A stretch of DNA of 64,000 nucleotides, taken from positions 13,686 through 77,685 of the forward strand of contig NIVC01002987.1 of assembly GCA_002269645.1 (NCBI GenBank), given 5' to 3'. Under the pieces are notes generated by a model that worked only from the letters and a program-made list of their open reading frames with translations, was not told where the DNA came from and made no database searches. Below are positions 15,813-46,757 of this stretch, in pieces; position 1 is the stretch's first letter, and each line of letters begins with the position of its first letter. Origin of the DNA: Macrostomum lignano (taxonomy: Eukaryota). The translations under genes and the position numbers were made by a program.

Positions 15813-18800
15813 TCACGAATTTTTGGCTACGACTAAGTGCAGACTGCGCAGCATCTTCACTAGTTTGAAATCGTCATCGCTGAGCTGCGATGTGTCCACC
15901 TTGGCAACAGATGAGTTGTCCTTAGCAACTGGCGAGGCCTTAGCAACCGACGAGTCCTTAGCAACCGAAGAGTCCTTAGCAACCGACGAGTTTGTCTTAG
16001 CAATAGGCTTCTTTTCTTCAGTAGCTAACGTATTCTCCTTAGCAACCAACGAATTCTCCTGAGCTGGTCCCGTAGCAACCGGTGCCTCAATAACACTGGA
16101 ATTTTTATCTGGCGCTGGCAACTCGGCCCATACGCTGTCGTTCATAGGAGCGCATTCCAGAAACCGGGTCACTCGCTTCTTAGCATCCCCCTGCACAGCC
16201 GATTCGGGCCTGTACAGCCAGTAGAAACGGCACTGCAAGCTGGCCGACAGCTTGCGCACCGACGACAGGCAGCGGTGGAACTCGAAGAAGCCCAGGTCGT
16301 CGGGCGAGGGCGCAGACGGCGCCAGCAGCAGGTCAATCGGCAGGGCGGCACCGAGACGGTCGTCTGCCAGCAGTTCTACATCACCGAGATTGACAACTTG
16401 GCTGTCGTTGTTGATAGACGCTGTTGATTTTGCCGACAGACTAGAGGCCATCAGCAAAGTGGAGGTGAGCCCAGCTGCCTGCAGCAGCTTTAAGCTGAGC
16501 CCCTGCTGGTCGAACAGCACCAGGACGCGCAGCGGGCGAGTTGGGCTAGATTCGCGATCGAGCTGAGGTCTGAGGGGGTGTGGGTACACGGTGTGGCTGA
16601 GGCTTAAGCCCGTCGGTAACCAGTGGTCCGAACTGAAGTATCTGAGTTTGTCAACACTGATGGGGAATATTCCCACCTGAGGGATCAATACATCTACACG
16701 GATGGGAAAAATTCCCACCTGAGGGATCAATACATCTACACGGATGGGAAAAATTCCCACCTGAGGGATCAAGACATCTACACGGATGGGAAAAATTCCC
16801 ACCTGAGGGATCAAGACATCTACACGGATGGGAAAAATTCCCACCTGAGGGATCAATATATCAAGACTGATGGGGAATATTCCCACCTGAGGGATCAAGA
16901 CGTCAAGACTGATGGTGAATATTCCCACCTGAGGGATCAAGACGTCAAGACTGATGGTGAATATTCCCACCTGAGGGATCAAGACGTCAAGACTGATGGT
17001 GAATATTCCCACCTGAGGGATCAAGACGTCAAGACTGATGGTGAATATTCCCACCTGAGGGATCAATACATCTACACGGATGGGAAAAATTCCCACCTGA
17101 GGGATCAATATGTCAAGACTGATGGGGAATATTCCCACCTGAGGGATCAGTGTATCAACACGGATGGTGAATATTCCCACCTGAGGGATCAATATTTCAA
17201 GACTGATGGGGAATATTCCCACCTGAGGGATCAATATGTCAATACTGATGGGGAATATTCCCACCTGAGGAATCAATATCAACACGGATGGGAAATATTC
17301 CCACCTGAGAGATCAGTGTGTCAGGACTGATGGGGAACATTCCCACCTGAGGAATCAATACGTCAATACTAAATAGGATTGGGGGGATCATAACTGAATG
17401 ACGTCAGTAGCCTGGCCTGTCAGGACGCAGGCAATAACAAAACTGTTACTAAACACAGTGCAAAACAAATCTGATCTGTCCTTACCGACCAGCGGGTCGC
17501 AGCAGGCCCATCGGAGCGGACATGCACAGACAGCAAATCCAGTCAGTAGCGTCAGGCTCCAAGTAGGTGGCCAGGGCCCAGGCGGCCGGGCCGACAAGAA
17601 GGGTGAGACAGGCCTGCGGGAACACGGATACGGCTGATGACAGTCATCGGGATGTGGACAAGATCAGATAGGATGCAGACAAGATCAGAGAGGATGCGGA
17701 CAGGATCAGAGCGGATGCAGACAAGATCAGAGAGGATGCAGACAAGATCAGAGAGGATGCAGACAAGATCAGAGAGGATGCAGACAAGATCAGAGAGGAT
17801 GCAGACAAGATCAGAGAGGATGCGGACAAGATCAGAGAGGATGCGGACAAGATCAGATAATGTAGGCAAGATCTGAGAGGATGCGGACAAGATCAGAGAG
17901 GATGCAGACAAGATCAGAGAGGATGCGGACAGGATCAGAGTGGATGCGGACAAGATCAGAGAGGATGCGGACAGGATCAGAGTGGATGCGGACAAGATCA
18001 GAGAGGATGCGGACAAGATCAGAGAGGATGCGGACAAGATCAGAGAGGATGCAGACAAGATCAGATAGGATACGGACAAGATCAGAGTGGATGCGGACAA
18101 GATCAGAGAGGATGCGGACAGGATCAGAGTGGATGCGGACAAGATCAGAGAGGATACGGACAAGATCAGAGCGGATGCGGACAAGATCAGAGCGGATGCG
18201 GACAAGATCAGAGAGGATGCGGACAAGATCAGAGAGGATGCGGACAAGATCAGATAATGTAGGCAAGATCTGAGAGGATGCGGACAAGATCAGAGAGGAT
18301 GCAGACAAGATCAGAGAGGATGCGGACAGGATCAGAGTGGATGCGGACAGGATCAGAGAGGATGCGGACAGGATCAGAGTGGATGCGGACAGGATCAGAG
18401 TGGATGCGGACAGGATCAGAGTGGATGCGGACAAGATCAGAGAGGATGCGGACAAGGTCAGAGAGGATGCGGACAAGATCAGATAATGTAGGCAAGATCT
18501 GAGAGGATGCGGACAAGATCAGAGAGGATGCGGACAAGATCTGAGAGGATGCGGACAAGATCAGAGAGGATGCAGACAAGATCAGAGAGGATGCGGACAA
18601 GATCAGAGAGGATGCGGACAGGATCAGAGAGGATGCGGACAGGATCAGAGCGGATGCGGACAGGATCAGAGAGGATGCAGACAAGATCAGAGAGGATGCA
18701 GACAAGATCAGAGAGGATGCAGACAAGATCAGAGAGGATGCGGACAAGATCAGAGAGGATGCGGACAAGATCAGAGAGGATGCGGACAAGATCAGAGAGG

Positions 18801-20723
18801 ATGCGGACAAGATCAGAGGATTGCGGATGAAGCCATGAAGCCGGTAATACCTGGCAGAACAGTCGTTTGCAGCCTGTGCAAGTGGCCGCCTGCACGCCGC
18901 AGCGCATCGCGCACACAGAGCAGGCGCGGGCGCCCACGCCGATGACGGCAGCGGCAAGGGCGTCATTGACCCGGCGGCTGCAGGGCTGACACAGCTGGCC
19001 AGCGAATACGGGATGCTGGATAGCCGGGTCGCTGGCCGCCGAGCCGCCGCAGGCCAGACAGTAGTCAGGCTCGTTGATCCGGCTGCGCCTGTAGTTCCGC
19101 ATCAGCTGGTCTGTGATAGGACGCGAACCCGGTACCTCCAGGCAATCGTTATCGTGGCTACCGCCGCTGCTACTGCCACTGGGACCTCCGCTTCTGTCTT
19201 CTCCCTCTCTCTTCTCCTTTGTTCCGACAGCTTGGTTAGGCTTTTTGCAGCCCCGTCCCACTGTTGAAGCGGCGGTCGCGCTCTGCTCAAAGTCGGAGTC
19301 GCTGTCGACCGCGGCGGCGGCTGATGTGACTGGACGACTCTGTGCAGCTGGGATGAGATGGTGCATCGAAGCATTTCATTGCGCAGTGCGTGGCGTTACC
19401 TTCAAGACCACAGCATCAAACAGGACCCAGGGTCTTGCGCTATGGACAACCAAGGCAGAAGGACGCTGCACTGAAGCCAGCAGGTGTCCGAGCTGCGCTC
19501 ACAAGTTTATCAAGCTGTTTTTTTTAACTGCTGCCGGAGACCGGCAAGCAAGCAAAGTTGCGGCGAAATTGCAGCTGCTCCTGTCTCTGCAGTGTTTTGT
19601 CTGGACGGATTTGTCTTTGGTAAAAACCTGCTTAGTTTTATGTATGTAAAAAACCAAATCTCTGCAGTCGTTTAGAAAAGCTCTCCAATGATTTTTTAAA
19701 CTTTTTTCTCTTGAAAAAACTTGTGAGCGCACCTCGGAGAAAACACCTGCTGGCTTCATCTGCAATTCGGAAGTCCAGCAGGTGAGGTATTGGGAATTCA
19801 GTGCAGAAAAACTGAAAACTTCTTATCTCGCCAATGCATTCATATTCATACATGCGCAACTGCTGGCCAACCTGGCCGATCCGGCCACCGTAAATTGTGG
19901 TGGACCAGGTGGACCAAGTCGCATTTTTAATAAAAAAAGTAAGTCGTATGGCCAGTGTAAATCAGGGGGGGGTTGCGCATGTATGTTTATATAGATTTCT
20001 TTTTTATTATTTAATATTATTGATGGGTGTTAAAATTCTTTTCTTGTTTTAGAAGTAGACCATATCTGTAGACGAACATGGATTTCTTAAGACAGCAGCT
20101 AAACACTGACCAGGCGCGCCGCTTCTAACGTAGGAACGCCGGTGCCGCTCGCGCATGCTGTCCAGGCAGCGCTCGGCCCACTCGGACAGCCGACAACCGT
20201 CGCCGCCGTTCAACAGCGCCTGCTGGCCGGCCTCCAGCTCGGCTAGCGACTCTCGTAGCCGGCCAAGCGCAACCCGGCTGGTCAGGGAGCCGCGCGCCAA
20301 CAGCTCGTCTAGCAGGCGGACTAGGCCGCGTTGCTGCATCGAGCCGCTAGCGGGGGCGCCAGCACCAGCCGCAGGCAGATGGACCAGGGCTTTCTGGCTG
20401 CTCAGTGGCAGCAGGGATTTCTGAGCAACTTCGGACACTTTGCCTTCGGCTAGCCAAAGCAGCCAGCGCCAGCCTGGCCGAGCCGGGCGAAGGTGGCAGC
20501 GCCAGCCGGACACAACCATGCCGGGATAATGGCGCGCACCCCATGGCGCCCAGGCCAGAGCGCCGAAGTCTTCAACTAGCTCGCCCGACTGGGGGGCCAG
20601 CATGTTGTCAGCGGAGCTGACGGCGTTGCCCGATTCGTTGTCGGATGCGGATGAAGAGTCAGACGACTCATTGTAGTTGTTGCTGACAGGCCTGGGTCGC
20701 TTGGTTGCGCCGCGGGAGGGCAT
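15813..20723 (-). CDS. DNMT3-family protein: PWWP + ADD + catalytically degenerate methyltransferase-like domain, ~688 aa
   Basis: Exons 20723-20111, 19347-18851, 17613-17486 and 16641-15813 have GT/AG boundaries with matching phases (1, 0, 2) and total 2067 nt in one ORF. PWWP: WAPWGARHYPG, RWLLWLAEGK. ADD: CLACG..HPVFAGQLCQPC..CSVC..CTGCKRLFCQACLTLLVGP..WICCLC..GLLR. MTase-like: PLRVLVLFD, GDV, IDLLL, FFEFHRCL, FYWLY, VTRFLE. Confidence 0.9.
16645..17350. repeat. Intronic minisatellite, 42-bp unit
   Basis: gatcaagacgtcaagactgatggtgaatattcccacctgagg repeats filling intron 3 of the DNMT3-like gene. Confidence 0.95.
17655..18830. repeat. Intronic minisatellite, 21-bp unit
   Basis: gatcagagaggatgcggacaa repeats filling intron 2 of the DNMT3-like gene. 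Confidence 0.95.
19470..19762. mobile_element. MITE-like element, ~290 bp, in intron 1 of the DNMT3-like gene
   Basis: ~55-bp imperfect inverted ends (tgaagccagcaggtgtccgagctgcgctcacaagttt vs aaacttgtgagcgcacctcggagaaaacacctgctggcttca). Confidence 0.65.
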
Positions 20724-20934
20724 CGCTCAGCTCTGTTGGCAGCAAAGCGGTCATGTAGAATAAAAGAATATGCTGCCCATACAGACTTCCAGACTTTCTC
20801 AGTGTCAGCTGGCTATATTTTTGATAATGCTCAAATATATTTTCTTATATATTGCTTATAATATTTTTTTGCTATTGGACAATAAGAATCATATTTTGGG
20901 CTTAAAGATATTACTGCAGTCTAACATCTAGGGG

Positions 20935-21090
20935 TTGTAGCCTAGTGTTTAGAGGGTCAGATTCACAACTAAAAGGCTAGGGTTCCATTCTCAACCCACT
21001 TAGAACAATTTGTGACCTTGAGAAAGACTTACTTAACTCTGCATTGCTTCAGTTCACCCAGTTGTAAAATGGATATGAATTAGCAGGGGT
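20935..21090 (+). mobile_element. Decayed tRNA-derived SINE with CORE-like segment
   Basis: A-box-like tagcctagtgtttag and B-box-like gggttccattctc. These are followed by tgtgaccttgagaaagacttacttaactctgcattgcttcagttcacccagttgtaaaatgg, which resembles the MIR/CORE-SINE core. Confidence 0.55.
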
Positions 21091-22431
21091 AATTGAGGGG
21101 GTATGTGTGTGGCAACCCCCTAGTTGTCAGACTTATAATTTATAACCAAAATATTTCAGTAATCAGTTAAAATAAAAAATATTAATTTATATCTTGCTTG
21201 TTGCATTTGTACTTTCTTATTATATAGCCCCTATAGCTTGGCTAATTTACTTTATTTTATCTTCTTTACACTATTTGCTAGGCCTATATAGTCCTAAATA
21301 ACATACTTATTATTATTAAAATCAATCGAAAAAGATAATGGTTAGATATATAACTATATTAAGGCTCTATGGCCTTAATAAGATACAATCTATATTAAAA
21401 AATGAATTTAAACAAAGTAAAAATTACTTAGTAAGCATTCTCAAAATCCACTTTAAAAACAGTGATCTCCCAGGCCTAACTTTTAAAGCATTTAGAAATA
21501 TATTATAAAAGTTATAAATGGGCTAAAAGTTAGCAATGGTCTAAAAGTTCTAGTCCAACTAGAGCTATTTGATTCTATTTATTGTTGATTTATTTCTATG
21601 TATATTATTTTGATGAACGAGGAGAATGAGGTAGGTGTGCAAATTTTATAATCAAAGCATTGAGCTAAGAATGTTACTATTGACTCTTGACTCATTTTTA
21701 CAAAAATAAAAGAATTTAGAAAACTAGGGCTACAAAAAATAATTATGATATATAATTATAATAGTTTATAAAAATATTCCAAAATGTAATATATGTTTAC
21801 CTATCAGTTTATCAATCTATCACCCTTTTGACTATTGCCTTTTTGACTATCATCCTATTGATTAGTATCTATCTATACTCATACCTAGCTAGTCCCGAGT
21901 CTATTTTGGTATTCTATATAAAAGTTCAAGTTATAAATATGTACCTATTGCTTTATAACTAAAATGGCTATTATTAAAAATGCAATGTTACCAAAGTAGA
22001 AAGTACTAAAGTGGCTATTACAAAAGTTGATTATTATTACCATTTAAGTTCTATAGCCTATTGTTATATGCAACATATTGGGCTTATTAATATTATAATG
22101 CCAAATTTAATATAGTTGTTATTGTGAGGAGTAAAAGTTAAGGCTTATAATTTATATTATATGCATTGAAACAAAAATAGGCCTATTGTATCAATGTAGG
22201 CCTAGTAATAAAAAAGCAAAATTTTTATGCTATAAGACACACACAGACAGTCAACAGAAAGACAGACAGAGTTTTCATTTTTATAGGTAGGCCTAGAGAT
22301 AGCAGTCTATAGGCATAGGCCCAAATTATTATATCACTTTTTAACTTCTATGCAAAAGTAGAAACACTGCTTAAGATGACAAGGGTGCTTATTAGGATTT
22401 TAAATTTGTTGTCTTATGCCTTATGTTTGGG

Positions 22432-23203
22432 GGTTACACCAAATTTGTCAACATCTAATTCATCAACAGACCTAAAATTTAAAAAGAAATTGAATTTGTC
22501 AACAGTTAAAACAAACTGAGCAAATTTGTCAACAACAAGACAGACTTACTAAAAAGCTTATTTCTTAACACAAAAACTATAAATTTATATAGGCCTAATT
22601 TGATGAGCAAAATATTGCAAAGACGTTAACAAGACTTCATGAGTACACACTCTAAATGCTATTGTGTATACACAACTCAAATCTAACAAATTGGGCAATC
22701 AATGCTATATAGGTCCTACATAATACTACATTCTACTTAGTTGAGTATCCAGATGCAATTATATCAAGAGCTAGTTTATTTGGTGTTTTTATTCTACATA
22801 TGATTTATTATGGTCATTTTATTTTTAATTCAATTTTTATTCTAAGTTTGTTTATCTCCTTAACCATTAACAAAGGTTTTGTTTGAGTATGACTTTAGAT
22901 TTCAAAATGTGTGCAAAAATAGTTCTAGCAAATTTATTGCAATTCAGCAGATTTAAAATCTGCAGGCTGTAGGCCCTAGTAGGTTTTAAAAAATATAGGC
23001 CTATATCAAATAAAACCATTTGCTTTGTTATCTTATATGTATCTTCTCAATAGGCTTTTGTATTTCAATTTTTAGCATAGGGCCTGGGCCTATAGTAAAA
23101 ATATACTAGGCCTAGCTGGTTAATAGTGTATCATCAGGTAACCAAATTTGTCAACAATGCTTGCTGACGAATTAGATTAGATGTTGACAAATTTGGTGGC
23201 ACC
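22432..23203. mobile_element. Non-autonomous DNA transposon remnant, ~770 bp
   Basis: Perfect 22-bp inverted match caccaaatttgtcaacatctaa (22437-22458 vs 23177-23198), plus internal aaatttgtcaaca copies. Confidence 0.6.
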
Positions 23204-26200
23204 TATGGTTGATTAGGCCTAGAAGACCTAAAAAAGGAAAAGGCAGTGTCAACATCAACTTAGAGTACAGTCTAGGTTTAATAATCTGTCTGGGTTTACC
23301 CACATAGCCTATGTTCTAAAGTCTACTACTAGTTAGTAATGTACAGCACTAGCAATATAATTATTAATGGTATTCTCTTATGCTGCATCCTATGTTGCTC
23401 GGCAGAGCTGGTAGACGGAGGACCGGCTTCCGGGTTGGTTGGAAAATTCAAAGATTGAAACTTTGAAAGATGAAGAAACGTCTATGAAGGCTAGCCTCTT
23501 ATAGCTGGAATGGACGTGTGCCCGGAGTCGTCGGCTCACGGCTCAATGTTTTAAATACGCGCCATCTTTTAAGTCTTTTTTAAGACGAGATTTATTTATA
23601 GCTTAAGAAGGGTGCCAAATTTGTCGTAAAAATATTCTGCTTTGAAGATGAGGAAGAGCAGACATCATAAGTAGATAAGTGTCAGTATTTTCCCTTTTTA
23701 TAGTGGAAGTAGTCATATAGTCGCACGAATTTAAAGCCTTTATATTTTCGGTACATTAATTTAAAAATTCCTGTAGATCTGGATATTAACAGTTAACACG
23801 AATACACGATATCACGATTGAGTTAGGTGCCTTTCGTGCCTAGCATTACATTAATTTATGTTGAATTGAATAGCTCAAATCTCAAAAAGATTTGGGCAGT
23901 CAGAACTCAGAACCAATATTATAATCATTCGTCTCTTATTAATATTTATTTTAGGGCCCTAGTTAAACTTGTGCATTAACTTTGTAAAAAAATTTGAAGG
24001 CAAATAAAGTTAAGCAAAGCATGCATACTTTGGAATTTAAAATTTGAAATAATTAATGAAAAAAAGTAGATTCTGAAATTTTAAATTGCTATTCACTAAC
24101 TAGATCAGAGATTCTAATGTACACGTTATACAATATTTGGTTAATTATAGGGTGTCACTGTGCATCATGTATCTGACTCATCTGGAAAAAAATAGATTGA
24201 TTAAAACACTTTTAAACAAGTTAAACATATGCAGGTATGCATGTGTTTTGTTATTCTTTTTTAAAGTTTGCTTGCACATTATTTTAGAGCATATTAATTA
24301 ATATATACTATTCTCACTTATTACCAAAGTGGCTGTTACCAAAATGGCTATTACCAAAATAGACTGTTACCTTGTTAGTAATATGCTTAATGCTAAGGGC
24401 CTATGTATAAAATTGGGATAAATATATAAAAAGGTATTTATTTTGTGCTAGGTTAAGCCCCTTACCTGCTCTATATAGGCCTAGTAGATAAATATCCATA
24501 GGTCAGGCTACAATATAATTTAAAGCCAAAGGGAATGATTATAATATAATATAATTCTATTATAGCAACTATTTCCCTAATTACTACTAATAGAAAATGA
24601 ATGAAATATATCACCTACAGCCCTATGTAGAAAGCTTAGTCCAGACTAGCTAGTCTGCACTTGGGTTGGGTAGTTTAGTCTATAGTCAATAGTCTAGCTA
24701 CCCTAGTTCTGTCTATAGTAGACCAGTCTAACTTTGTATTTCTGTATATCAAATCCAAGTCCAGACTAGCTTTTCAAGACCAGACTATCCTAGACAGAGC
24801 TTTTTGTATATGGCTCCTAGGCTTATTATTAATATTATCCATTTAGTCATTTAGGTTAGAGCTGTGGCCATCTTGGTATCTAGCCATCTTGGTCATGCAC
24901 TACCTGTTTTTGGCATAAAATAATTTGTCCTCCTTGCAACTTTTGCCTTTTGCTTTGGGTTTCTCTGATAGTAACTGGCCATTTTGCCTCTAAACAATTT
25001 TTGCCATGGGTTTTTTCCCCAGACCATCTTGCTTAAATAGACTTTTTTGTCCCTATCCAGGCCAATTCAGTTATTGACCAGTTTGGCCAAAGTGGCAATA
25101 AATGCTAATAGTGATATATTCTTTATTAGATTTAGAAATTTCATCGATTTTTATTCTTGTTCTTGCATCTTTTTTAGAGAATCAATCAAAAATTGACATC
25201 AAAAAGGCAATAAGTCTAAAAGGGCCATAACCATAACAATTACATATATTAGACTTGTATTTATTAAAATGAATAATAGGCCCAATTAAAATGTATTAGA
25301 CTTCTACTATTATTCTACATGGATATATATTGATACTAAGGCAGGCATTATTTTAAATAGCTATCAAAAATTTATGCTGCTTAGAAATAAGAACAAACTT
25401 TATTTGAGTATATTTTTTATTATATCTTTCAATGCCTTTCAATGTCAATGTCATTTAACAACTATTTTATTTTAGTAGCTTTATGCATTCATCTTAGACA
25501 AATATAACATGAAACAAGTCATATTTGCCTTCCTATATTCATGTCTAAAAAGTTGCAAAAATTATTAACAATATGTAGCAAGTACTAAGAGTAAGAGATT
25601 AGACTCAGACTAGCAATCTAATGTCCCCTTTAGGATGCCCAATAAGCAAAGAACAAAAATATTCATGCAAATTCATTAAAAAGCACATTTTCTTAAGAAC
25701 CAATTCTTTTTTCAGTTTTATAAATCACATTATTTGTGTAAACTTCTCATAGGCAAAGACGTTTATGTTTGTTATAATTTTTTTTCTAAAAAATAACGAA
25801 AGGACAACAAAATAAAGCCTTCACAAAGATAACAAGCATTCCCCTTATATAGAAAGCATCTCCTAGACTGCAAACATCCTTCTAAATAGCATGCATCTCT
25901 AGATGGCAAGCATCCCCCAATAATAAGTATCCCACAATGGCAAACATCCCTTAGATAGCAAGCATAGTAAGCACCCCCCATATAGCAAGTATCATCAGAA
26001 AAATAGTATATTTCCATCATTGGAAGTCTTAGTAATTATTTTTGTTAGTTTTTTTTTGTTGAAGAATAACTATTAGCTTATAAATTAACAGCTTTATAAA
26101 AATCTCTTATATGAATCCTATTTTAGTTACTTTTAGTTGCTTAATGTAGTTAATTGTTCCAGTATGTGATGGCTCGGCACTTCACTGCATGCCAACTACT

Positions 26201-26302
26201 GCGCATACGCAGAGCCGGTAGACCTGCCCTGTTTTCCTGGTCTGGTCCGCCAGATACTTACCCATCCAGCCAGTGCCTGCCAATCCCCTATCTCGCTTTA
26301 CA

Positions 26303-29300
26303 ATGAGCATCCTGTGCCCATGCGCAGCCTCCAGCAGTGGTGCCTCATCTGGCGCCGAGGCCAAGTACTCGGTCGGCCGGGGCAACAAGCTGTCAGCCGA
26401 GCAGGTCAGTCGTCAAATCGATCGACAGTTGAAAGCCGACCGGGAGCTTCGACGCCACGAACGCCGCATCCTGTTGCTAGGCACTGCAGCTAGCGGTAAA
26501 AGTACATTTCTGAGATCGATGCGTATTATACACGAGGATCGATTCTCTGAGCAGGAGCTGCTCAGCTTCAAGTCAGTTATCTATTGCAATATTTGGCGCG
26601 GCCTGATGAAATTGCTGTACGTTAAAAAACGGCTTGGCATTCGCTGGGAGAATAATAAAACTGGCGTACCGGCTGTTAAAGCGCTGCTGGCTCTGGAGAA
26701 GGAAATTGGCCACTCGGCGCTCATGGCCTGCGGCCTGCGCGAGGATCAGTTCCTCAGGGCAGCGCCTTTTATTCAGGTATTTCTGTTTGCATGCTCTCCT
26801 GTGATTATTATCCATTAGGTCATTAGGGTTTTGTTAGCTTTCCCATGATGATTGTCCATTAGGCCATTAGCATTTTTCTTGCTTTAATTCCCATGATGAT
26901 TATCCATTAGGTCATTAGCGGTTTTCTTGCTTTAATTCCTATGGTGATTATCCATTAGGTCATTGAGGTTTTCTTTCTTTAATTCCCATGATGGTTATTC
27001 ATTAGGTCATTAGCGGTTTCTTGCTTTCCCATGATGATTATCCATTAGGTCATTAGCAGTTTTCTTGCTTTAATTCCCATGATGGTTATTCATTAGGTCA
27101 TTAGCGGTTTTCTTGCTTTCCCATGATGATTATCCATTAGGTCATTAGCGGTTTTCTTGCTTTCCCATGATGATTATCCATTAGGTCATTAGCGGTTTTC
27201 TTGCTTTCCCATGATGATTAACCATTAGGTCATTAGCGGTTTTCTTGCTTTAATCCCTATGGTGATTATCCATTAGGTCATTAGCGGTTTTCTTGCTTTC
27301 CCATGATGATTAACCATTAGATCATTAGCGGCTTTCTTGCTTTAATTCCCATGATGATTAACCATTAGGTCATTAGCGGTTTTCTTGCTTTAATTCCCAT
27401 GATGATTAACCATTAGGTCGTTAGCGGTTTTCTTGCTTTAATTCCAATGATGATTATCCATTAGGTCATTAGCGGTTTTCTTGCTTTCCCATGATGATTA
27501 TCCATTAGGTCATTAGCGGTTTTCTTGCTTTCCCATGATGATTATCTATTAGGTCATTAGCGGTTTTCTTGCTTTCCCATGATGATTAACCATTAGGTCA
27601 TTAGCAGTTTTCTTGCTTTAATTCCCATGATGATTATGCATTAGGTCATTAGCGGTTTTCTTGCTTTCCCAAGAGGACTATCTATTTAGTCATAGGGTTT
27701 CGACTACTAAAATATGATTTGTCATTACCTGGGTTGGGAGGGCCAGTGTCCTATAGCTGTTTGTGAATTCCAATCCGATTGCCACATGTACAGGAAACTT
27801 TTACTAATGAAATGTTATTGGGAAACTGGCTGCTATCTGACAAGCGGCGCACTAATCGCTTTCCGTATTTGATAGGAATGAGTCAATCAGGCCAGCAGCA
27901 GTCAGTGTCTTATGGGCAAGCATTAGCCAGAATATTTCTGCGCAGCGTTACACTTGGGGATGGGGTGCAAGGGCGAATGGCCATCCTGCTTTCCCCTCTT
28001 TCTCTCTCCCCCCTCTCTCCCACAGAAACTTTCCTGCATTTCTGGTCGGTCGGTCGTACTTCAATTTTCAAACTTTTCCGGAGCTCCCTCTTGTTTTTCC
28101 TATTCGAATGATCCGCATATCAGGCTTGGCTTGGCATATCATTACAGATTCAAATAGGCGTATGTATCTATACAGGCCATGCTGGTCTGTCCGCAGTGGC
28201 TTTGCATTCTCCCTCTTCCCACTGCTTCCCCCATTTCACCTCTGCTGGGCTTGCTACCGACAGGCCCATCTACGTCTAGTGTAGCCCTGTTGTGTTGTAT
28301 TTAATGGCGGATTCTTGTCGCGCCCCCTGACTTGGCTGCTGTAGATAATAGCTTTGCCTTTTGCTATTTTTTTGTCTGCAAATGCAGTGTGTAGTAGTCC
28401 ATATATACTACTGACAGTACTGTTATTTATGCTTTTCAATGAGCAGAATGAGTTTCGTAAGATTTTAATTTTGTGTTGTCTCTCAAATGTGTGTGTCAGC
28501 TGGCTACTGTGTTGTCTGTCAAATGTGTGTCAGCTGGCTACTGTGTTGTCTGTCAAATGTGTCAGCTGGCTACTGTGTTGTCTGTCAAATGTGTGTCAGT
28601 TGGCTACTGTGTTGTCTGTCAAATGTGTGTCAGCTGGCTACTGTGTTGTCTGTCAAATGTGTGTCAGTTGGCTACTGTGTTGTCTGTCAAATGTGTCAGC
28701 TGGCTACTGTGCCATCTCTGCATCTTCGCATGATTGAACATTGCCATGAGCTGGGAAGCTTATCACACCACACGCACAGGTTTGAATAGAATTAAAATGC
28801 TGTTTTTCACCTGCCCAGGTGCTCTGGTGCGACGCCGGAGTTCGTGAAGCATTCGAGCGCCGGCACAGCGTACCCGGCGACGAGGAGTTCAAAGATGTCG
28901 GAGAGAATCTGGATTACTATTTGAATAGGCTCAAATCTATCTCGGTTGTTAACTACAGGCCAACTGACGCGCACATATTGCATAGCAGGCGGTTTACTGA
29001 CTCGGTAAGGCAGTTTGTCTGGCTGCGATCTGCGAACTCTTTGCTGCCTACTTGCAGTAGTTTTCAAGTGATTACTGAGAGTCAGCCCCAAGCCCTACTG
29101 AGAGTCAGCCCCAAGCCCTACTGAGAGTCAGCCCCAAACCCTACTGAGAGTCAGCCGCAAACCCACTGAGAGTCAGCCGCAAACCCTACTGAGAGTCAGC
29201 CGCAAACCCTACTGAGAGTCGGCCGCAAACCTACTGAGAGTCAGCCGCAAGCCCTACTGAGAGTCAGCCCCAAACCCTACTGAGAGTCAGCCCCAAACCC

Positions 29301-36900: not shown

Positions 36901-39433
36901 TGAGTGACAATGTGATTGCATGTGAGTGACAATGTGATTGCATGTGAGTGACAATGTGATTGCATGTGAGTGACAAAGTGATTGGATGTGAGTGACAAAG
37001 TGATTGGATGTGAGTGACAAAGTGATTGCATGTGAGTGACAAAGTGATTGCATGTGAGTGACAAAGTGATTGGATGAGTTACAATGATTGCATGTGAGTG
37101 ACAATGTGATTGGATGTGAGTGACAATGTGATTGGATGTGAGTGACAATGTGATTGGATGTGAGTGACAATGTGATTGGATGTGAGTGACAATGTGATTG
37201 GATGTGAGTGACAATGTGATTGGATGTGAGAGACAATGTGATTGGATGTGAGTGACAATGATTGGATGTGAGTGACAATGCTTGGATGTGAGTGACAATG
37301 CTTGGATGTGAGTGACAATGCTTGGATGTGAGTGACAATGATTGGATGTGAGTGACAATGTGATTGGATGTGAGCGAAAATGTGATTGGATGCGAGCGAT
37401 AATGGGATTGGATGCAAGTGACAATGATTGGACGAGTAAAGCGAAGTGATTAGACGAGCGACAAAGTGATTGACGAATGGCATAAAGTGATTAGACGAGT
37501 GACATAAAGTGATTAGACGAGTGACATAAAGTGATTAGATGAGTGACATAAAGTGATTAGACGAGTGACATGAAGTGATTAGACGAGTGACATGAAGTGA
37601 TTAGACGAGTGACATGAAGTGATTAGACGAGTGACATGAAGTGATTAGACGAGTGACATGAAGTGATTAGACGAGTGACAAAGTGACAGCCGCTTACAAA
37701 CGGACTGGGAGGCGGCGGCGCCGTGGGCCGGTCCGACGCCCTGGAATTCCGTTGTCGATGCCTCAGTGCGGTTATCTACCTCGGGTAGGTAGAAATTGAT
37801 TCGAAGTTTTTTTACTGTTTTTGCCGAAAAATTTACGCCGGGATCTGAAATTCAAAAATAAAAACTCGTGCTTCTTAAAACACAGGAGAAACGAGCAAAG
37901 GAAATTCACCTGACATACCTGCAATATTTATATTGAAGTTTTCAAGAGTCGCCTTTTTACTAGCCATCGCCTCTCTCCACTTACTCTGCTGACAGGACCG
38001 CACCATCACGCGATCCAGACTGCAACGGGATATGACAGTGAAAAATAAAAATGTCTGTCTGATCTAATCCTCTTAACACCAATCCAGATCCTCCTCCTCC
38101 CCACTAATCCATATCCCCCTCCCCACTAATCCAGATCCCCCTCCCCACTAATCCATATCCCCCTCCCCACCAATCCAGATCCCCTCCCCACCAATCCAGA
38201 TCCCCCTCCCCATCAATCCAGATCCCCCTCCCCATCAATCCAGACCCCCTTTCCCTCCAATCCAGACCCCCTTCCCCACCAATCCATACCCCCTTCCCCA
38301 TCAATCCAGATCCCCCTCCCCACCAATCCGGATCCTCCTCCCCACCAATCCAGATTCTCCTCCCCACCAATCCAGATCCTCCTCCCCACCAATCCAGATC
38401 CTCCTCCCCACCAATCCAGATCCCCCTCCCCACCAATCCAGATCCCCTTTCCCTCCAATCCAGATCCCCTTTCCCTCCAATCCAGATCCCCTTCCCCACC
38501 AATCCAGATCCCCCCTCCCCATCAATCCAGATCCCCGTCCTCACCAATCCAGACCCCCCTCCCCATCAATCCAGATCCCCTTCCTCACCAATCCAGATCC
38601 CTCCCCATCAATCCAGACCCCCCTCCCCATCAATCCAGATCCCCTTCCTTACCAATCCAGATCCCTCCCCATCAATCCAGATCCCCTTCCCCACCAATCC
38701 AGCTCCCCTTCCCCACCAATCCAGATCCCCCCTCCCCACCAATCCAGCTCCCCTTCCCCACCAATCCAGATCCCCTTCCCCACCAATCCAGATCCCCCTC
38801 CCCATCAATCCATATCCCCCTCCCCATCAATCCAGATTCCCTTCCCCATCAATCCAGATCCCACTCCCAACCAATCCAGATCCCCCTCCCCATTAATCCA
38901 GATCCCCTTCCCCACCAATCCAGATCCCCCTCCCCACCAATCCAGACCCCCCTCCCCATCAATCCGGATCCCCTTTCTCACCAATCCAGATCCCCCTCCC
39001 CATCAATCCAGATCCCCTTCCTCACCAATCCAGACCCCCTTTCCCTCCAATCCAGATCTCATTCCTCGACCATTTAGATGCCACAGCCAGCTTACAGCTT
39101 TTAAACAAGCCAAGTGATTCATGCTCACCGGACCAGCGCTTTCTCTTCGCCAGCAGGAATAGTAACAACCTTCTTGAATATGCCATCAGTGCAGCTGTTG
39201 CCATCCAATTGATACGGGTGATTCTCGCCATCTACACTAACCAAAACAGCTATAACTGTGCACTGAAGTAAGCTTGATGGACCTGCGACCTCGCCTAATT
39301 TTCGCCGAACAGCCAATGTCACGCACTGACCTTCCAATTGGCCTCGCAAGTACAGAGTCTCATTTAAATTTCGAGTGCGGGCATTGCCAAGTGGACAAGT
39401 GGGTGCAGGCTGCACTTCAATGCGCATATACAT
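33940..39433 (-). CDS. Highly divergent Rel-homology-domain transcription factor (Rel/NF-kB-like), ~466 aa
   Basis: Exons 39433-39129, 38019-37919, 37844-37698, 36503-36385, 36152-35909 and 34424-33940 have consistent phases (2, 1, 1, 0, 1) and total 1401 nt. Motifs: MRIEVQP, ARTRNLNE (cf. RelA MRFRYKCE), VLVSVDGENHPYQLDGNSCTDGIF (cf. [26 protein letters not shown]), FYLPE, IPT end SEPIRFRW (cf. SEPMEFQY), basic PRRK, Q/P-rich acidic tail. The exon 4 donor is weak, so that junction is uncertain. Confidence 0.75.
34463..34665 (+). mobile_element. tRNA-derived SINE, copy 1
   Basis: B-box ggctcgattcc; ~200 bp closely matching 54163-54375. Confidence 0.75.
34665..35820. repeat. Intronic minisatellite, ~22-bp unit
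   Basis: gtgtgaggatggcggaggccca repeats in Rel-like intron 5. Confidence 0.95.
36520..37680. repeat. Intronic minisatellite, ~22-bp unit
   Basis: gatgtgagtgacaatgtgattg repeats in Rel-like intron 3, grading into gacgagtgacatgaagtgatta. Confidence 0.95.
38080..39055. repeat. Intronic C-rich minisatellite, ~22-bp unit
   Basis: ccaccaatccagatccccctcc repeats in Rel-like intron 1. Confidence 0.95.
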
Positions 39434-40669
39434 TTATGTAGGTAGCATGCAGTCAATAGAAATTTTTTTTAAAGTCCATTGGTTAAAATATTATTTTCAA
39501 TGCTAAAATTGATATACATTGAATATGCCATAATGTAAAATTACTTCTATATTTATATAGCCTAGGCCTATGGTTGTCATCAATAACATTTATAATCATC
39601 TATGTGCAACCTCCTCAATTTAGTTTTAAAACGTGACTTATTTATTTGGTCTATCTGCAACTTGGTAGTTGGTTCTAATAATGGTATAGTTGTGACTTTC
39701 TTTTGCTTTCTTTCTCTTTTGTTGGTTTTACCATTTATTGTTTTATTTTCTTCCTTGCTTCTTTTTTCCTGCTTACATTGATCATTTATTGTTCTCTTTA
39801 CTTATTATTATTATTATTGTACTTATTTTTATTATTGATCTACTCTAGAAAGGGTTTCTTATACAAAAAATGATGGCATATTTACTATGACATACTTAAA
39901 ATGATTTTTAAATAAAACATTGGCATGCAGAGTTGGAATGCACAAAAAATGGCACCAAGTTCAAGTTTGGCATAAATGGATATATCTAAATTTTGATTAA
40001 GTAAAACCTTTTTATAGAGTTTTGCTGTAGCAGTGGATATGGCTATAGGAAGTTATTACAGATATGGTTATAGGAACACATATTTCCTATATCTAGTTCT
40101 TGTATTTAGTAATACCACTCAACTGAGACTTAAGACAATTGAAGCTGTTGATTTAATAGGGGTAAAGATGAATGAATGTTCAAAGTGAGGGAACTTTTAA
40201 GTCCTTGGAATTTAGGACTCAAGCATCAACATAGATTTTCAATGCCATGTCCACATTGTGGTTGAGTGATAGGGGCTAAAGTTAAGATAATTTTGTCACT
40301 TTCAAAGGCGACCTAAGACCCTACATGGATTTGGGGGCTTAAGCAATAGAGAGTTTTGATGCCATGTGCACATTCTAGTTGGGTGGTGGAGACTAAAGTT
40401 AATATAAATATTTTCAATTTCAAGGGGAACTCTTAAGTTCCTAGAATTAAAGACTAGGATTGGGTTAGGGTAGTAAGGGCTAAATTTAGGATGAATTTTT
40501 TCATTTTTAGTATGAAATGTCAATGTCAAGGCTTATGGGGGGATTGCTAAGATATAAAGGCTGAGGTCAGAAGCTACATATAGTTTATTCAAAAAAATTT
40601 TACATTCTTTGTTGGCTGGCTCCTAACAGGGAATGCTGATAAAAGAAGCAAGTCAAAAATAAAAGATAA

Positions 40670-41270
40670 GTCATGTCAAACATAAAAGAAGCATCATGTC
40701 AAACATAAATAAGCATCATGTCAAACATAAAGAAGCATCATGTCAAACATAAAGAAGCATCATGTCAAACATAAAGAAGCATCATGTCAAACATAAATAA
40801 GCATCATGTCAAACATAAAAAAGAATCATGTCAAACATAAAGAAGCATCATGTCAAACATAAATAAGCATCATGTCAAACATAAAAAAGAATCATGTCAA
40901 ACATAAAGAAGCATCATGTCAAACATAAATAAGCATCATGTCAAACATAAAGAAGCATCATGTCAAACATAAAGAAGCATCATGTCAAACATAAAGAAGC
41001 ATCATGTCAAACATAAATAAGCATCATGTCAAACATAAAGAAGCATCATGTCAAACATAAAGAAGCATCATGTCAAACATAAAGAAGCATCATGTCAAAC
41101 ATAAAGAAGCATCATGTCAAACATAAAGAAGCATCATGTCAAACATAAAGAAGCATCATGTCAAACATAAAGAAGCATCATGTCAAACATAAAGAAGCAT
41201 CATGTCAAACATAAAGAAGCATCATGTCAAACATAAAGAAGTATCATGTCAAATGTAAAGAAGCATCATG
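40670..41270. repeat. Minisatellite, 22-bp unit
   Basis: catgtcaaacataaagaagcat repeats, CpG-free, inside the AT-rich block. Confidence 0.95.
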
Positions 41271-44200
41271 AGCATGTCAAACATAAAAGATGCACCATGT
41301 AAAACTGTGACTCTTGGGGAGACTTACTAAAATGTCAAGGTTTATGGGGGAAAATTGCTAAAAAGTCAAGGCTCTAGGATAAGGGTTAAGGTTGGGGTTA
41401 GGGTTAAGATTAGGGCTAGGTTCAGCTTTTAAGGTTGGAGTTGGGACCAAGGATGATATATAACAACTGGATTATTAAACTACTCTATCTAAAAGGGTTG
41501 AATATGCCTAAACCCTTGCTTCTTCCTCATTGGCTGCTATTTTTATCTCTTTTGCTATATTGACCTAAATATAAACATATTGCCTGGTTTGAAAATTAGC
41601 TAGGACAGGAGGGCTTGTAGGCCATGGTAGGTGGATAGATAAATCTAGGATGTATTTGAAAGTTACTTATATACTTGTATTATCCTAAGTGTATATTAAA
41701 CCCCTAGCCAATGAGTATGAAAGAGAGGATTTGTAGGTCAAAAATTAAGCATGCTTTAATGCCAGTCTGACAATCCAATTGTTATATATTATCCTTGGTT
41801 ATGACTAGATTAGGGTTAAGATTAGGGTTAGGTTTAGGACTAGGATTTTAGGGTTAGATTAGTTGAAATTGCTTAGAGTTCAAGGCTCACAGGGGGATTG
41901 TTAAGATGTGAAGGCTTTAAATGCAATTTATTAAAAGATTGTATTTTATTTTTTGTTGGCTCCCCAACAAAGATGCAAATTGCTATTCTATCTGCTAAAA
42001 CTCATCAATCTTTCTATTTAATCTAATATAGTATTCATTGTTAAACTAAATATAATTTTAAAGAAAATAATTAAACATGCAAAAGTAAAAAAGTGCCTAT
42101 TATCCTCCCTATAGGAAAAATTTGTAAAACTGTGGACAGTGTCTAGTGCACTTTCAAAAATTTTCTAAAGTGCAGTGCATACACAGGTGTGCAACGCCTA
42201 CGCACGCTGCCCTTTCCTATTGGCTGCTGCTCTAGCAAATAAATATACATGGAAAAGGGTCTAATACCTTTGTGGAAGGGGCCTATACACTTGTTATTTC
42301 TCATATAATGCTTAGAGATGTTCCAAAATTTCAATTTTGATTTTCCAAAATTTGGAATTTCAATTTTGAAATAATTCGGAAGTCAAAATTTTGGAAGAGT
42401 GTAAGAGTGACTAAAAATAAACTAATTTGTGCTACATTTACATGTATTTTGTTTTGCATAAGCAGTAAATCAAGAGTAAAAAAGTGAGTTTTTGTCATAG
42501 TAAACTTTGTTTTTCTGAATTTTGATTTTGGAAAATTTTAATTATGATTTTAAAAAGTTAGTGAATTTTGATTTTGAGAAAATGATTTCTAATAATCCTA
42601 AAGCACAATAAAATAATTTGACTATTTTTCTAAAGTGCACATCTGCAAGTTTTCAACATTTATTCCAATAGGGATAATCCTTATAATTAATTTTTTTCTA
42701 TTTTTATTAAGCCCACTTATTTTTAAACTATAATTTATATAAGGGCCTAACTTAAAACTCAAGTTAAAGTCAAAATACCTGGTAGATCTAGGTCTATTAG
42801 ATATTGTCATTCCTTTCAACTTTATATTCTATTTGTTTCTTCTATTTTAATTCATTTAGCTTCCCTTTAATAGTTCTATAGATTTTGATAAAGCAGTGCT
42901 TATCTTTATAGTATCATATGAATAATTTCTATCTTATTCCTGCATTATTGTGAGAATAATTTTCTGCTTAATCTACATGGCATATGGACAAGATAGCAAT
43001 CCTATTGATCTATATAATATGCTATAAGAATAATTTCTGTCTTAGGCCTATCCATATGGCATACTAATATAATAAGATGGTTGATTTTCCTACAAATATT
43101 ATAGGGAATAATTAATGTCTTATCCTTATGGCACAATGACAAAAAAGCCTAGTCTACCTTATCTTTCTATAGATATATTATAGGCCTATAGAATAATTTA
43201 GTTTGTTACTTAGTTGTTAGGAGTTAGACCTAGGCCTATGGTCTAATTGCAATATAATAATATAACTTTGCTTGAAGATTTGTTTTATAGAAATAAAAAT
43301 TAAAAATAATAAATAATAAAGCAAAGGTATATATAGAAGATAAGACAGCTATATTGTTAGTATGTCATGTGGATAAAAAGAAAATTATTCTCAAAGTATA
43401 TATAGATCAAACAATAGGATGGGCTAGCTATCTTGCCAATGTGCCATATAGATAAGCAAAAAATTATCCCCACAGTACTATAAGAGTAAGACAAATTATT
43501 CTTATGGTACCGTGGGGATAAACACTACCTTTTGATAAATCCATGCCATTTATTAATCATTACTCAATTTAACTATCAGAATAAATAATTATGCCAATTG
43601 CTAATGTTTTAGGGCTACAGCATTTCTGTCTAAATCATTTTGAGTCATAGGGGCCAAGTCTCATGATGACATGATTGAGTTGGGAGCTTGTATCAGAAAT
43701 CAAAAACTTATTAATTTATGTTGCACTAAAGATTAAAATTTAAATTATAAACTTATTGTGTTGAGCCAGCCAAACTAGGCTAGACACATAGCATAGGCCT
43801 AGGCCTATCTGTGCCTGAGGCTGGATACCGAGTTCTGTTTTTATATCAACTGAGTCCTAAGCCACACTACAATGTTACATTGCCAACATTACTAATAATG
43901 CCCTTTACTGCCTAAGGCATGCAATGATATTGGTAATGTCCTTACAAATAAAATAATTAACGTATACAAAAAGTTATAGTAACTGAATTGTCACTAATAA
44001 TATAATAACAGTTTTAATGATATCCATAACCAATACCATCATACTATATTCTATAAGAAGATGTTTTATCACTTATATTATCAGCCCGGTCACGATCGCG
44101 GCTGAGGCAAGATCGCACTGCGAAGGAGCACACCTGCTGCTTCGTAGAAAAAAATAGATTTAAACTTTGCGATGAGTTGTCAAAATGTTTAACAAATATA

Positions 44201-44539
44201 TTTTATAAGAAAGTCTAAAAAAGCTCGAATAAATGTCGTATACACGCTTTTTATTTTTCCATTTTTGTGTTTAATTTAGAATATCTTACTAATTATACTA
44301 AACGGAAGTCGGAAGGCTACTCTCGCTTTTTATGTTACCACTGGACTGTACTATAGTACAATAATAATACATTATTGCATTATTATCTACTATAATCAAT
44401 AAATAAATTTACTTTCGGTATCTTTCTGTAAACATATGTTAAACATATCATTTTACCAAGGGCTAGGACCGCACAGCAGTATGTACTATAGCAACAACAA
44501 CAACAACAGAGAATACGCAGTTAGCGTCACAGGGCGCGC

Positions 44540-45420
44540 TTCAAGGCCAGGTCGCGAATAAACGCCACGCCGCCGGCCGAATCCGGGGCGCCGGCGTCAG
44601 CCAGCAGGCAGTCGACACGAAACGCCGAGTGCGCGCCTGCCCTGCCATAGATTGGCCCAGCAACTGGGGATCTGGGAGGCTGGTGGCCCAGCAACTGAGG
44701 ATCTGGGAGGCTGGTGGCCCAGCAACTGAGGATCTGGGGAGGCCAGGGTGGCCTGCAGCGTTAGCAGCAGCACCTCCTGCACCGGCTCTGGGCAGTACGA
44801 CTCAGCGCGGATGATGTGGCCTGCCAGCTGGATCGTCACCGACGGCGCAACAGGTCGCTTGGACGGACCAGGCCGGCGCGGCGATACAAAGCCGCGTTGC
44901 ATGTGGTCACTCGCTCGTAGACGATCTTGAAGGCGGCGCGCAGCAGGCCAGCGTGCGCCGCGTCAACTTGTTGCTCGAGTGACTCCGTCAGCGTCCAGGT
45001 CTCGGCGTTGTACAACAGGACGGTCTCGATCACCGCCTGGAACAGCGCCGCCCTCTGGCGGTCGGATAAGGCCTCGGACTGCAGGACTGCCCTCGCAGAA
45101 AGAAAGGCAGCCCAGGCAAGCCCGCAGCGACGCCGCAAATCCTCGCGGACGCCGGGAACCAGACCGCCGAGGTAGACGAACTGCTGACAACGTGGAAGCT
45201 CTGTCACCTGTCCATCAGCGCCTCGGCACAAAATCGATGTCGTCCGGCACGCAGAGCACAACAGTCCTTCTGCGTGTTGACCACCAGGCCGACACTCGCC
45301 GCAAAAGCAACTAGCTTGTCCAGTTGTCGCTGGGCGCCCTCGACAGGAGGACAGCAGGGCGAGTTCATCGGCGTAGCCAAGCACGCTGAGACGCCTCTCC
45401 GGTTGACGTCCAACCGGAGA
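44540..45420 (-). mobile_element. 5'-truncated, frameshifted RTE-clade LINE (reverse transcriptase C-terminal part)
   Basis: YADELALL (cf. YADD), QRQLDKL..SVGLVVNTQK, FVYLG, AWAAF, LFQAVIETVLLYNAETWTLT in shifting frames. Confidence 0.85.
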
Positions 45421-46757
45421 TACTACAGCAGATCTTTGCATTACATGTATAACACATTAATATACCAAAGGACCACTGTATATATCCTGGTCCTTGATTA
45501 AAACCTCATTAAAAATATTGGCTGCGCTATGCATTGCGTGATCCTCTTATTACTTTGAATAAACGGTACAAACAGCAGTACCGTATACTGAGATTTTCGA
45601 TTAAACTAAAGACATATTTGGGCTTATGAAAATTAAACTCAGTACACACAGACTCTATATAATAAAACATAAAGTGGGGTGAAAATGCAATCAATTGTTC
45701 GAATCGTATATTGCTTTCAAATTTAGAAAACGGAACCCAATGTTTAAATCCTATAAAGAGTCTGCATGGCCCATTGCCAACAACAATATGCTATAATTTC
45801 TGACTGAGAAACTCGACTGAGAGCTGGTTATGCAAAATTATGCAAGTTAATGGAACGCCTGCAGAGACACGCTTGTCTTAGAATATCTGAGAAAGATACG
45901 AGTACTAAAACTATAGACTATTGCAAAGAACAATTGATGCATTGTCATCAGAAGAGCACTTTGCTAAGATTCTTCGCCATCAGTAATAAGTAGTTTTGTA
46001 TGAGAAAACTTCGTACGCACGCACCCAAGTTCAAGCGAACTATTTGATATAACAGAGCAGCTAGGCTATGAAAAGTTTGCTCTTGCTCTCAACTAGGGGA
46101 GCGTACTTGCGAATCTCGGCGACAGGCACTTTCATGCAATGCCTCTTTGGTAACCCCCAATACGCCCTCCTCAGGGGGCCTGCTCAAGTATAGTCCGTTG
46201 GTTTCTTAGACTCAGATATTACTTACTCACCGCCCGCTATCTGCTGTGCATGGCCTGCCTAATGTACAGCGAATGAAGGTTGGTGAGAAATTCTGGATAT
46301 TTCTGTACAGCCCCAGCCTGTACTCCGGCCCTCTCTACCCCTCTGTTGTGTGGCCGGTTGCCTAGAGCAAGGGCGACCCCCCCCTCCCAACGCATTCCAT
46401 TCAAGCTCTAGCTTATTAATTGAGATGCTCCCCACAAACTCCGCTTACTCACTGCGCATCCCTACTCCTTCCTAACCATTCCTCCTTTTCTATCCCTTGT
46501 GTCAAAATCAGTTCCCTTTCCCCCATCTTCTCGATCTTGAGTCTCTCCTTCCAATTCCTCAATTATTAAGATAGAAAGCCTTTTTATATATATCAAGCAG
46601 AAGGCGACCGTGAGTGACTTTTTAATTCGTGACTGCAACCGAGATTTTATAATTTAACAGAAAGAAACGTTCGCAAAGAAACCACAACAGAAACGGACAT
46701 CAAAACTAAAAGCAATCGCGGTATCCGAATTCGCTTGCGCGTCTCAGCAGTCTCAGC

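Follow-up and report, generated by a model that had tools for sequence, protein, structure and literature searches.

The locus analysed here is a stretch of 64,000 nucleotides from the flatworm Macrostomum lignano (assembly GCA_002269645.1, contig NIVC01002987.1, positions 13,686 to 77,685), hereafter the window, in which a spacer at 20760-26170 separates a DNMT3-like gene (minus strand) from a divergently oriented G-alpha gene (plus strand). The spacer (block 1) is made of two AT-rich halves that are almost free of CpG, blocks 1a and 1b, with a short CpG-normal islet between them, and a further block of the same composition, block 2, lies elsewhere in the window (Table 1). Together the three blocks make up 14.9% of the window, yet they contain 18 of its 2358 CpG (0.76%). 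The Poisson test compared the counts with expectations of 44.6 CpG in block 1a and 38.5 in block 1b; in the rest of the window the observed/expected ratio (o/e) of CpG is 0.76. Over all three blocks the G+C fraction (GC) ranges from 0.298 to 0.307 and CpG o/e from 0.079 to 0.085, and this identical composition of three unrelated blocks suggests one common equilibrium behind them. The CpG that are left in the spacer lie at 21327, 21618, 21896, 22624 and 23168 in the left half and at 24124, 25145, 25760 and 25797 in the right half. The by-eye counts of an earlier note on this DNA (5 in 20761-23399 and 4 in 23940-26170) were thus essentially exact; for the first 1 kb of the window, where about 24 had been estimated, we counted 21. 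The depletion as such is real and far from random.

The depletion concerns CpG alone. Dinucleotide o/e values in the blocks were 0.08 for CG, 1.55 for GC, 1.20 for CA, 1.07 for TG, 1.21 for CC, 1.12 for CT and 1.40 for GG, and none of CpA, CpC and CpT is depleted. The boundaries are as sharp as had been claimed: GC drops from 0.55 to 0.34 across one 200-bp step at the edge of block 1, whose limits are set by the nearest flanking CpG on either side (20748 and 26175). A distance of 36 bp separates the left edge from the start codon of the DNMT3-like gene, and one of 133 bp the right edge from that of the G-alpha gene. All block edges, including those of block 2, correspond either to starts of genes or open reading frames (ORFs), at 20723, 26303 and 39433, or to the junction with a long interspersed nuclear element (LINE) at 44087.

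Blocks are heterogeneous, made mostly of unique sequence and low-copy in the sequences compared. Self-BLAST of the window recovered no repeat common to blocks and non-blocks, and no long repeats between blocks. The only ORF of at least 70 amino acids in block 1 is a low-complexity one (25772-26020), ARAGORN and Rfam recognised neither tRNA-like sequences nor RNA families there, and the Mlig_3_7 annotation calls no gene between the G-alpha and DNMT3-like genes of the second copy of the locus introduced below. Three kinds of eroded repeats had been described in the spacer. The element with terminal inverted repeats is present, bounded by a perfect inverted-repeat pair, and so are short decayed tandem units; the short interspersed nuclear element remained unconfirmed, nothing tRNA-like having been recovered by either program. 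Block 2 contains a CpG-free array of 27 copies of a 22-bp unit (40671-41270). Degenerate TTAGGG-like interstitial runs also occur in block 2 (40440-40490, 41380-41430 and 41800-41870). Another CpG-free region, at 12795-14620, was considered as a further block and set aside, being a 31-bp tandem array with a GC of 50%, a different phenomenon.

Table 1. Features of the window that bear on the CpG-poor blocks (positions in the window; o/e, observed/expected ratio).
Feature	Position	Strand	Remarks
Block 1a, left half of spacer	20760..23399	.	GC 0.298, 5 CpG, o/e 0.085, Poisson P 7e-14; also in L003
CpG-normal islet between 1a and 1b	23400..23939	.	540 bp, 22 CpG, o/e 1.17, GC 0.376
Block 1b, right half of spacer	23940..26170	.	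GC 0.302, 4 CpG, o/e 0.079, Poisson P 2e-12
Block 2, same composition	39434..44086	.	GC 0.307, 9 CpG, o/e 0.083, P 6e-25
Remnant of element bounded by terminal inverted repeats, in block 1a	22437..23198	.	23-nt perfect inverted repeat 22437-22459 / 23176-23198; AAATTTGTCAACA sub-repeats
TAGGCCTA in block 1a, n=8	21279, 22178, 22197, 22288, 22590, 22996, 23107, 23214		
TAGGCCTA in block 1b, n=1	24476		
TAGGCCTA in block 2, n=6	39563, 43043, 43181, 43231, 43794, 43800		
TAGGCCTA in window, plain TA in L003, clean 6-bp indel	22590..22597	.	Alignment, indel list
TAGGCCTA in window, plain TA in L003, clean 6-bp indel	23107..23114	.	Alignment, indel list
TAGGCCTA only in L003, clean 6-bp indel	~23138		Alignment, indel list
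DNMT3-like first coding exon (ORF range; ATG 20723)	20049..20723	-	Same start as P0123 = BOX15_Mlig004102g2; CpG o/e ~0.9
DNMT3-like ADD-domain exon ORF	18479..19366	-	Pfam PF17980 ADD_DNMT3, E 1.6e-07
DNMT3-like methyltransferase-like exon (start approximate)	15813..16650	-	Aligns to DNMT3C/3A/3B catalytic domains, 8tci E 2.9e-06
G-alpha first coding exon ORF (ATG 26303)	26273..26818	+	Pfam PF00503, E 2.4e-19; 406-aa G-alpha gene called at matching L003 place
ORF/exon, ATG adjoining left edge of block 2	39125..39433	-	No Pfam match
CpG-rich LINE fragment, 3' junction = right edge of block 2	44087..45441	-	44087-46700 CpG o/e 1.00

The window was compared with two paralogous loci of the same assembly (Mlig_3_7, GCA_002269645.1), L003 on the 621-kb contig NIVC01000352.1 and L001 on contig NIVC01000372.1, the whole sample, window included, amounting to about 108 kb. 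Each of the two differs from the window, and since neither contig is identical to it we treated L001 and L003 as independent copies. The order found in the window recurs in L003: the G-alpha gene, AT-rich CpG-poor DNA, a CpG-bearing islet, again AT-rich CpG-poor DNA, and the DNMT3-like gene. L001 begins inside exon 1 of the DNMT3-like gene, its position 1 corresponding to about 20302 of the window, about 460 bp short of the block, and CpG-stripped blocks may be sites of assembly breaks. The two-copy comparison inside blocks is thus that of the window with L003, for the spacer of block 1 only.

Divergence between these two copies is mosaic. It is 0.4-1.2% at 18750-22250, 7-11% at 22250-24000 and about 1% beyond 26000, while at window positions 24000-25100 there is no homology, L003 having other AT-rich DNA and a LINE fragment there. 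The jump at about 22250 falls inside block 1a and not at its edge; 1.5 kb of the block has the low divergence (0.6%) of the flanking gene, and the islet matches the surrounding block in divergence. Such a mosaic suggests an exchange, by recombination or gene conversion, between deeply diverged haplotypes or homeologues of this polyploid genome. An apparent excess of transitions against L001 at 1270-1800 was traced to register shifts in a tandem array whose 20-bp unit has two variants, and not to hypermutation.

The islet kept its CpG in both copies, with 13 CpG common to the window and L003 despite about 10% divergence. Measured against the usual definition of a CpG island (at least 200 bp, GC of at least 0.5, CpG o/e of at least 0.6), its length of 540 bp and o/e of 1.17 are sufficient, and its GC of 0.376 is too low. 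It may be a younger insert, a protected element or an unannotated promoter. By eye, the islet carries a YY1-like GCGCCATCTT motif and transposon-like CCAAATTTGTC sub-repeats.

CpG appears to behave differently inside the diverged parts of the block. In stretches diverged by at least 3%, none of the eight alignable CpG was common to the window and L003, and four of the eight faced CA or TG. The commonest adjacent double difference between the copies was CA against TG (six cases, against three for the AC/GT control), as expected if the same ancestral CpG has decayed on one strand in one lineage and on the complementary strand in the other. L003 supplies two further cases. A LINE fragment with an RNase H domain (PF00075, E 8.8e-07), absent from the window, lies in its block at L003 4026-4995, with a CpG o/e of 0.445, a TG/CA o/e of 1.29 and a (CA+TG)/(AC+GT) ratio of 1.89, whereas the corresponding values for a LINE fragment outside the blocks are 1.00, 1.02 and 1.20; the fragment in L003 looks like decay in progress, and in place. 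A repeat of three units of about 190 bp, also in L003, has CG, CA and TG at the same positions of different units, which is the pattern that in-situ decay would leave.

Outside the blocks, CpG transitions between copies exceeded non-CpG transitions about 1.5-fold in the comparisons with L001 and L003 (0.0147 against 0.0091 and 0.0087 against 0.0057). In a toy context-dependent equilibrium model, a rate ratio k of 1.5 gave a CpG o/e of 0.80-0.83, close to the 0.76 of the rest of the window, and k had to be raised to about 30 to reach 0.07-0.08 at a GC of 0.29. By this model a genome-wide process acting for long enough would be insufficient, and something local would be required.

The blocks have a second mark, the palindrome TAGGCCTA. 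All 15 of its occurrences in the window fall inside the three blocks, against about 0.1 predicted from base composition. Among octamers of the form TA-NNNN-TA it ranks first in the blocks, and per TA site the difference between blocks and the rest of the window (15 against 0) has a Fisher P of 8.6e-09. L003 has 14 occurrences (5606-9445), of which 13 belong to block DNA; the remaining one lies beside the islet in an insert specific to L003, which the partition assigned to the islet region. L001 has none. Besides the three clean differences listed in Table 1, in which one copy has the octamer and the other a plain TA, three more indels of 6-7 bp between the copies consist of ATAGGC, GGGCCT or GTAGGCC. 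Of the roughly 22 short indels that 1.15 kb of block contains, six are of this type; the islet and the flanks have none such.

TAGGCCTA may be the excision footprint of a cut-and-paste transposon that targets TA and has GGCC termini; a GGCC terminus is its own reverse complement, which would explain why the motif is uniform. A separate process, acting in the same compartment as the loss of CpG, would then have inserted six base pairs at TA to give the octamer. The Tc1/mariner element Minos leaves 6-bp excision footprints, and the three clean differences have the form of a Tc1/mariner footprint: TA is duplicated around four residual bases, with a net gain of 6 bp, and the empty site is a plain TA. 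Restriction to CpG-poor blocks is, to our knowledge, not a property of Tc1/mariner elements, and in this TAGGCCTA departs from them (15 against 0). A source element with TA-GGCC...GGCC-TA ends was not found in the window, L001 or L003, and a literature search on the octamer yielded primers and oligonucleotides only. An origin by telomerase healing was rejected, as only about two of the 15 sites are preceded by the T that TTA would require. In L003, a telomere-like (CCCTAA)x3.3 run directly adjoins (CTAGGC)x2.7 at 5973-6014.

We lean, if only slightly, towards the explanation that the spacer is regionally confined, germline-methylated relic intergenic DNA that has been losing CpG by deamination of 5-methylcytosine (5mC). 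The spacer and block 2 would belong to a relic intergenic compartment constitutively methylated at CpG in the germline, that is the neoblast-derived, lineage. Deamination of 5mC would remove CpG at about 20-30 times the rate of other C-to-T changes, and AT-biased neutral mutation would complete the shift to an equilibrium at a GC of about 0.30 and a CpG o/e of about 0.08. CpG would be kept outside this compartment: in genes and promoters, in young retrotransposon fragments, in tandem arrays and in the 540-bp islet. The sharp look of the edges would result from their position at gene starts and at the junctions of younger CpG-rich insertions. Germline methylation directed at certain regions, with 5mC deamination, predicts a regional loss specific to CpG and an instability of CpG inside the block, and to that extent it is supported indirectly. 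From the sequence we infer both the causal role of methylation and its persistence to the present.

Several observations weigh against this explanation. The o/e of TpG/CpA, the products of such deamination, is 1.07 in block 1a and 1.08 in block 1b, against 1.22-1.27 in the model and 1.00-1.17 in controls; block 2 reaches 1.20, with its tandem array contributing. Clumping of G and C in the blocks (GG 1.40, CC 1.21, GC 1.55) depresses all mixed dinucleotides, but the shortfall of the surplus stands. Only two copies are compared and the substitutions are unpolarised, so that all eight unshared CpG could have arisen recently from an ancestor free of CpG. The excess of CA/TG differences over the control is small (6 against 3), the LINE fragments inside and outside the block belong to different families, and a block that begins 36 bp from a start codon would be unusual for methylated heterochromatin. 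Lastly, the pattern is known from one 64-kb window and two paralogous loci, and all of the evidence is sequence.

Age without any regional targeting is the alternative that survives best, although we consider it unlikely. The blocks would then be the oldest neutral DNA, at a genome-wide mutational equilibrium, and all other sequence would be under constraint or too young for decay. This would agree with the coincidence of their edges with the gene starts at 20723, 26303 and 39433 and with the LINE junction at 44087, with the identical composition of all three, and with the accumulation of TAGGCCTA sites and their degenerate variants in them. The 1.5-fold rate measured outside the blocks leads, however, to an equilibrium o/e of about 0.8 instead of 0.08, and the islet retained its 13 common CpG at about 10% divergence whereas the adjoining block retained none.

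The DNA could also have been AT-rich and CpG-free from the start, or have excluded CpG for a reason other than methylation. The absence of a TpG/CpA surplus in blocks 1a and 1b is in line with such an inherent composition, as are the CpG-free unit of the 22-bp array in block 2 and the block-specific insertion of TAGGCCTA, by which the compartment is seen to have sequence dynamics of its own. We nevertheless find this origin improbable: the blocks are heterogeneous and mostly unique and have no long repeats in common, the non-homologous block DNA of L003 has the same composition, and the three-unit repeat of L003 has CG, CA and TG at the same positions.

The earlier note had combined regional germline methylation with, possibly, a defence resembling fungal repeat-induced point mutation (RIP). 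Such a premeiotic process would recognise duplicated DNA and flood it with C-to-T transitions. Methylation is the part that may stand, as the best available reading; a RIP-like process now appears very improbable. The blocks are indeed AT-rich and sharply bounded, their TpA/ApT is 0.91-1.12, an o/e of 0.08 is below that of vertebrate genomes, and deamination catalysed by a DNMT is compatible with the sequence taken by itself. RIP is recognised by a high TpA/ApT combined with a (CpA+TpG)/(ApC+GpT) below about 1.03 and by a composite index above 0. The check by these ratios that the earlier note had proposed went against RIP in all three blocks: (CpA+TpG)/(ApC+GpT) was 1.20, 1.38 and 1.51, the composite index was -0.08, -0.33 and -0.60, and TpA/ApT was just as high in CpG-normal AT-rich controls (1.15-1.16). 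Moreover only CpG is depleted, and the blocks are low-copy whereas true duplicates keep their CpG: two inverted arms of 312 nt in the window, with 93% identity, retain theirs and differ by 13 transitions and 8 transversions, and tandem arrays of the window retain theirs too, one with an o/e of 2.6. The spectrum between the block copies of the window and L003 (64 transitions, 29 transversions) is two-way, with A/T in the window facing G/C in L003 at 36 of the transitions and the reverse at 28, and such a flood fits neither the position of the divergence step, inside the block at about 22250, nor the 1.5 kb of block diverged by 0.6%, nor an islet as diverged as the block. RIP uses a cytosine methyltransferase of the RID/DIM-2 type; the methyltransferase-like gene examined here, the DNMT3-like neighbour, lacks catalytic motifs.

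An artefact, be it a chimeric join, a contaminant (for instance DNA of a food diatom) or foreign or viral DNA, might be suspected from the abrupt change in composition and from the end of L001 about 460 bp before the block, but it can practically be dismissed, as can the refutation by a chimeric or contaminant join that the earlier note had foreseen, for the whole arrangement, with the same block between the same two called genes, recurs on a 621-kb contig at 0.4-11% divergence, and block 1 contains no ORF of at least 70 amino acids except the low-complexity one at 25772-26020 and no match to RNA families.

Germline methylation of a compartment, the explanation we lean towards, can be set beside known systems. 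In mosaic invertebrate genomes (sea urchin, Ciona), methylated and unmethylated compartments alternate, CpG o/e is bimodal, and in the canonical pattern depletion falls on transcription units (gene bodies), where it is attributed to germline 5mC deamination. The window resembles them in having sharply bounded, specifically CpG-depleted domains beside DNA with near-expected CpG, but here a gene-free spacer is depleted, and much more deeply (o/e 0.08); the four genes of the window that we examined have a CpG o/e of about 0.8-1.0, which is not the depletion of methylated gene bodies. RIP-affected regions of Neurospora and Leptosphaeria are sharply bounded AT-rich, gene-poor blocks with decayed mobile elements, and the blocks share all of these traits, mobile-element debris included; they differ by the lack of a CpA-to-TpA signature, the negative indices, the loss of CpG only, the untouched duplicates of the window and the absence of a one-way flood. 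A CpG-poor background with a short stretch that keeps CpG, the islet with its 13 common CpG, recalls the bulk of vertebrate genomes with their CpG islands, except that the depletion is local (about 15% of the window) and that the islet has a GC of 0.376 and no known promoter.

Methylation is found on transposon and intergenic DNA in some animals and in basidiomycete fungi. As there, decay at this locus affects non-genic, transposon-derived DNA and not genes; unlike transposon-directed methylation, it does not extend to young retrotransposon fragments or tandem arrays located outside the blocks, and the compartment is defined by place or age, not by repeat identity. In kind the blocks would be the familiar CpG fossil of a methylated compartment; what is unusual here is its place in a gene-free spacer, its depth and the TAGGCCTA signature.

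M. lignano is the flatworm model that is reported to have retained DNMT1 and DNMT3, with low global 5mC (PMC11292947, PMC10658182), and a review states that the pattern of genomic methylation in free-living flatworms is unknown (PMC9246332). With 0.76% of the CpG of the window in the blocks, methylation of every CpG there and nowhere else would show up as a low global level, in agreement with those reports. A stronger version of the methylation hypothesis, about which we are doubtful, would be that of an animal whose heterochromatin-like relic compartment holds all of its CpG methylation, where 5mC would be about 30-fold mutagenic, possibly through enzyme-driven deamination, with no methylation footprint on gene bodies and with a dedicated 6-bp TAGGCC insertion at TA. 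Such a compartment would be a new architecture of animal methylation, with a fungus-like outcome reached without RIP. The methylation reading itself, without these additions, predicts that the low global 5mC sits almost entirely on the few CpG of AT-rich intergenic blocks and not on gene bodies. M. lignano would in that case depart from the canonical invertebrate gene-body pattern, and an animal amenable to transgenesis and RNA interference would become available in which to study the boundaries of methylated domains. The TAGGCCTA insertions are a second, independent marker of the compartment and may record intense transposon traffic or a novel repair process.

The DNMT3-like gene beside the spacer probably encodes a catalytically inactive product, a DNMT3L-like cofactor or paralogue, because the catalytic motifs are replaced or absent: motif I (FDGIATG) reads FDQQGLS, the PCN of motif IV is absent and the ENV of motif VI reads RPE. 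Together with its ADD domain the gene (15813-20723) has a DNMT3-type fold. The protein appears to end after motif VI, and the public model P0123 (438 amino acids) does not include the methyltransferase-like exon. The earlier note had allowed that the adjacency of block and gene might be coincidental, and probably it is, since block 2 has the same composition with unrelated neighbours and the DNMT3-like product is without these catalytic motifs. At the right edge of block 2, the ORF at 44836-45441 has by eye a reverse transcriptase-like motif (GYADELALL) and no Pfam match.

The G-alpha gene (26303-30098, plus strand) is divergent in sequence. Its C-terminal exon of 176 amino acids had no relative at an E-value of at most 1e-10 among 5.8 billion proteins, and the same exon was recognised by Pfam (E 2.3e-24). 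Elsewhere in the window, a single-exon ORF for a Kir channel (9733-10863, minus strand, 376 amino acids) has 100% identity to the M. lignano protein BOX15_Mlig033444g2, the matching annotated products being 394 and 405 amino acids long, and a spliced ceramide glucosyltransferase product of 415 amino acids was reconstructed. The window is also very rich in minisatellite arrays, many of them intronic (12795-14620, 18000-18818, 26802-27700, 34667-39058 and 51362-53300). Examples are a 16-bp unit repeated more than 120 times with a CpG o/e of 2.6, 39 copies of a 21-bp unit, 19 copies of a 44-48-bp unit, four arrays of 22-bp units, and an array of 61 copies of a 31-bp unit from which CpG is absent.

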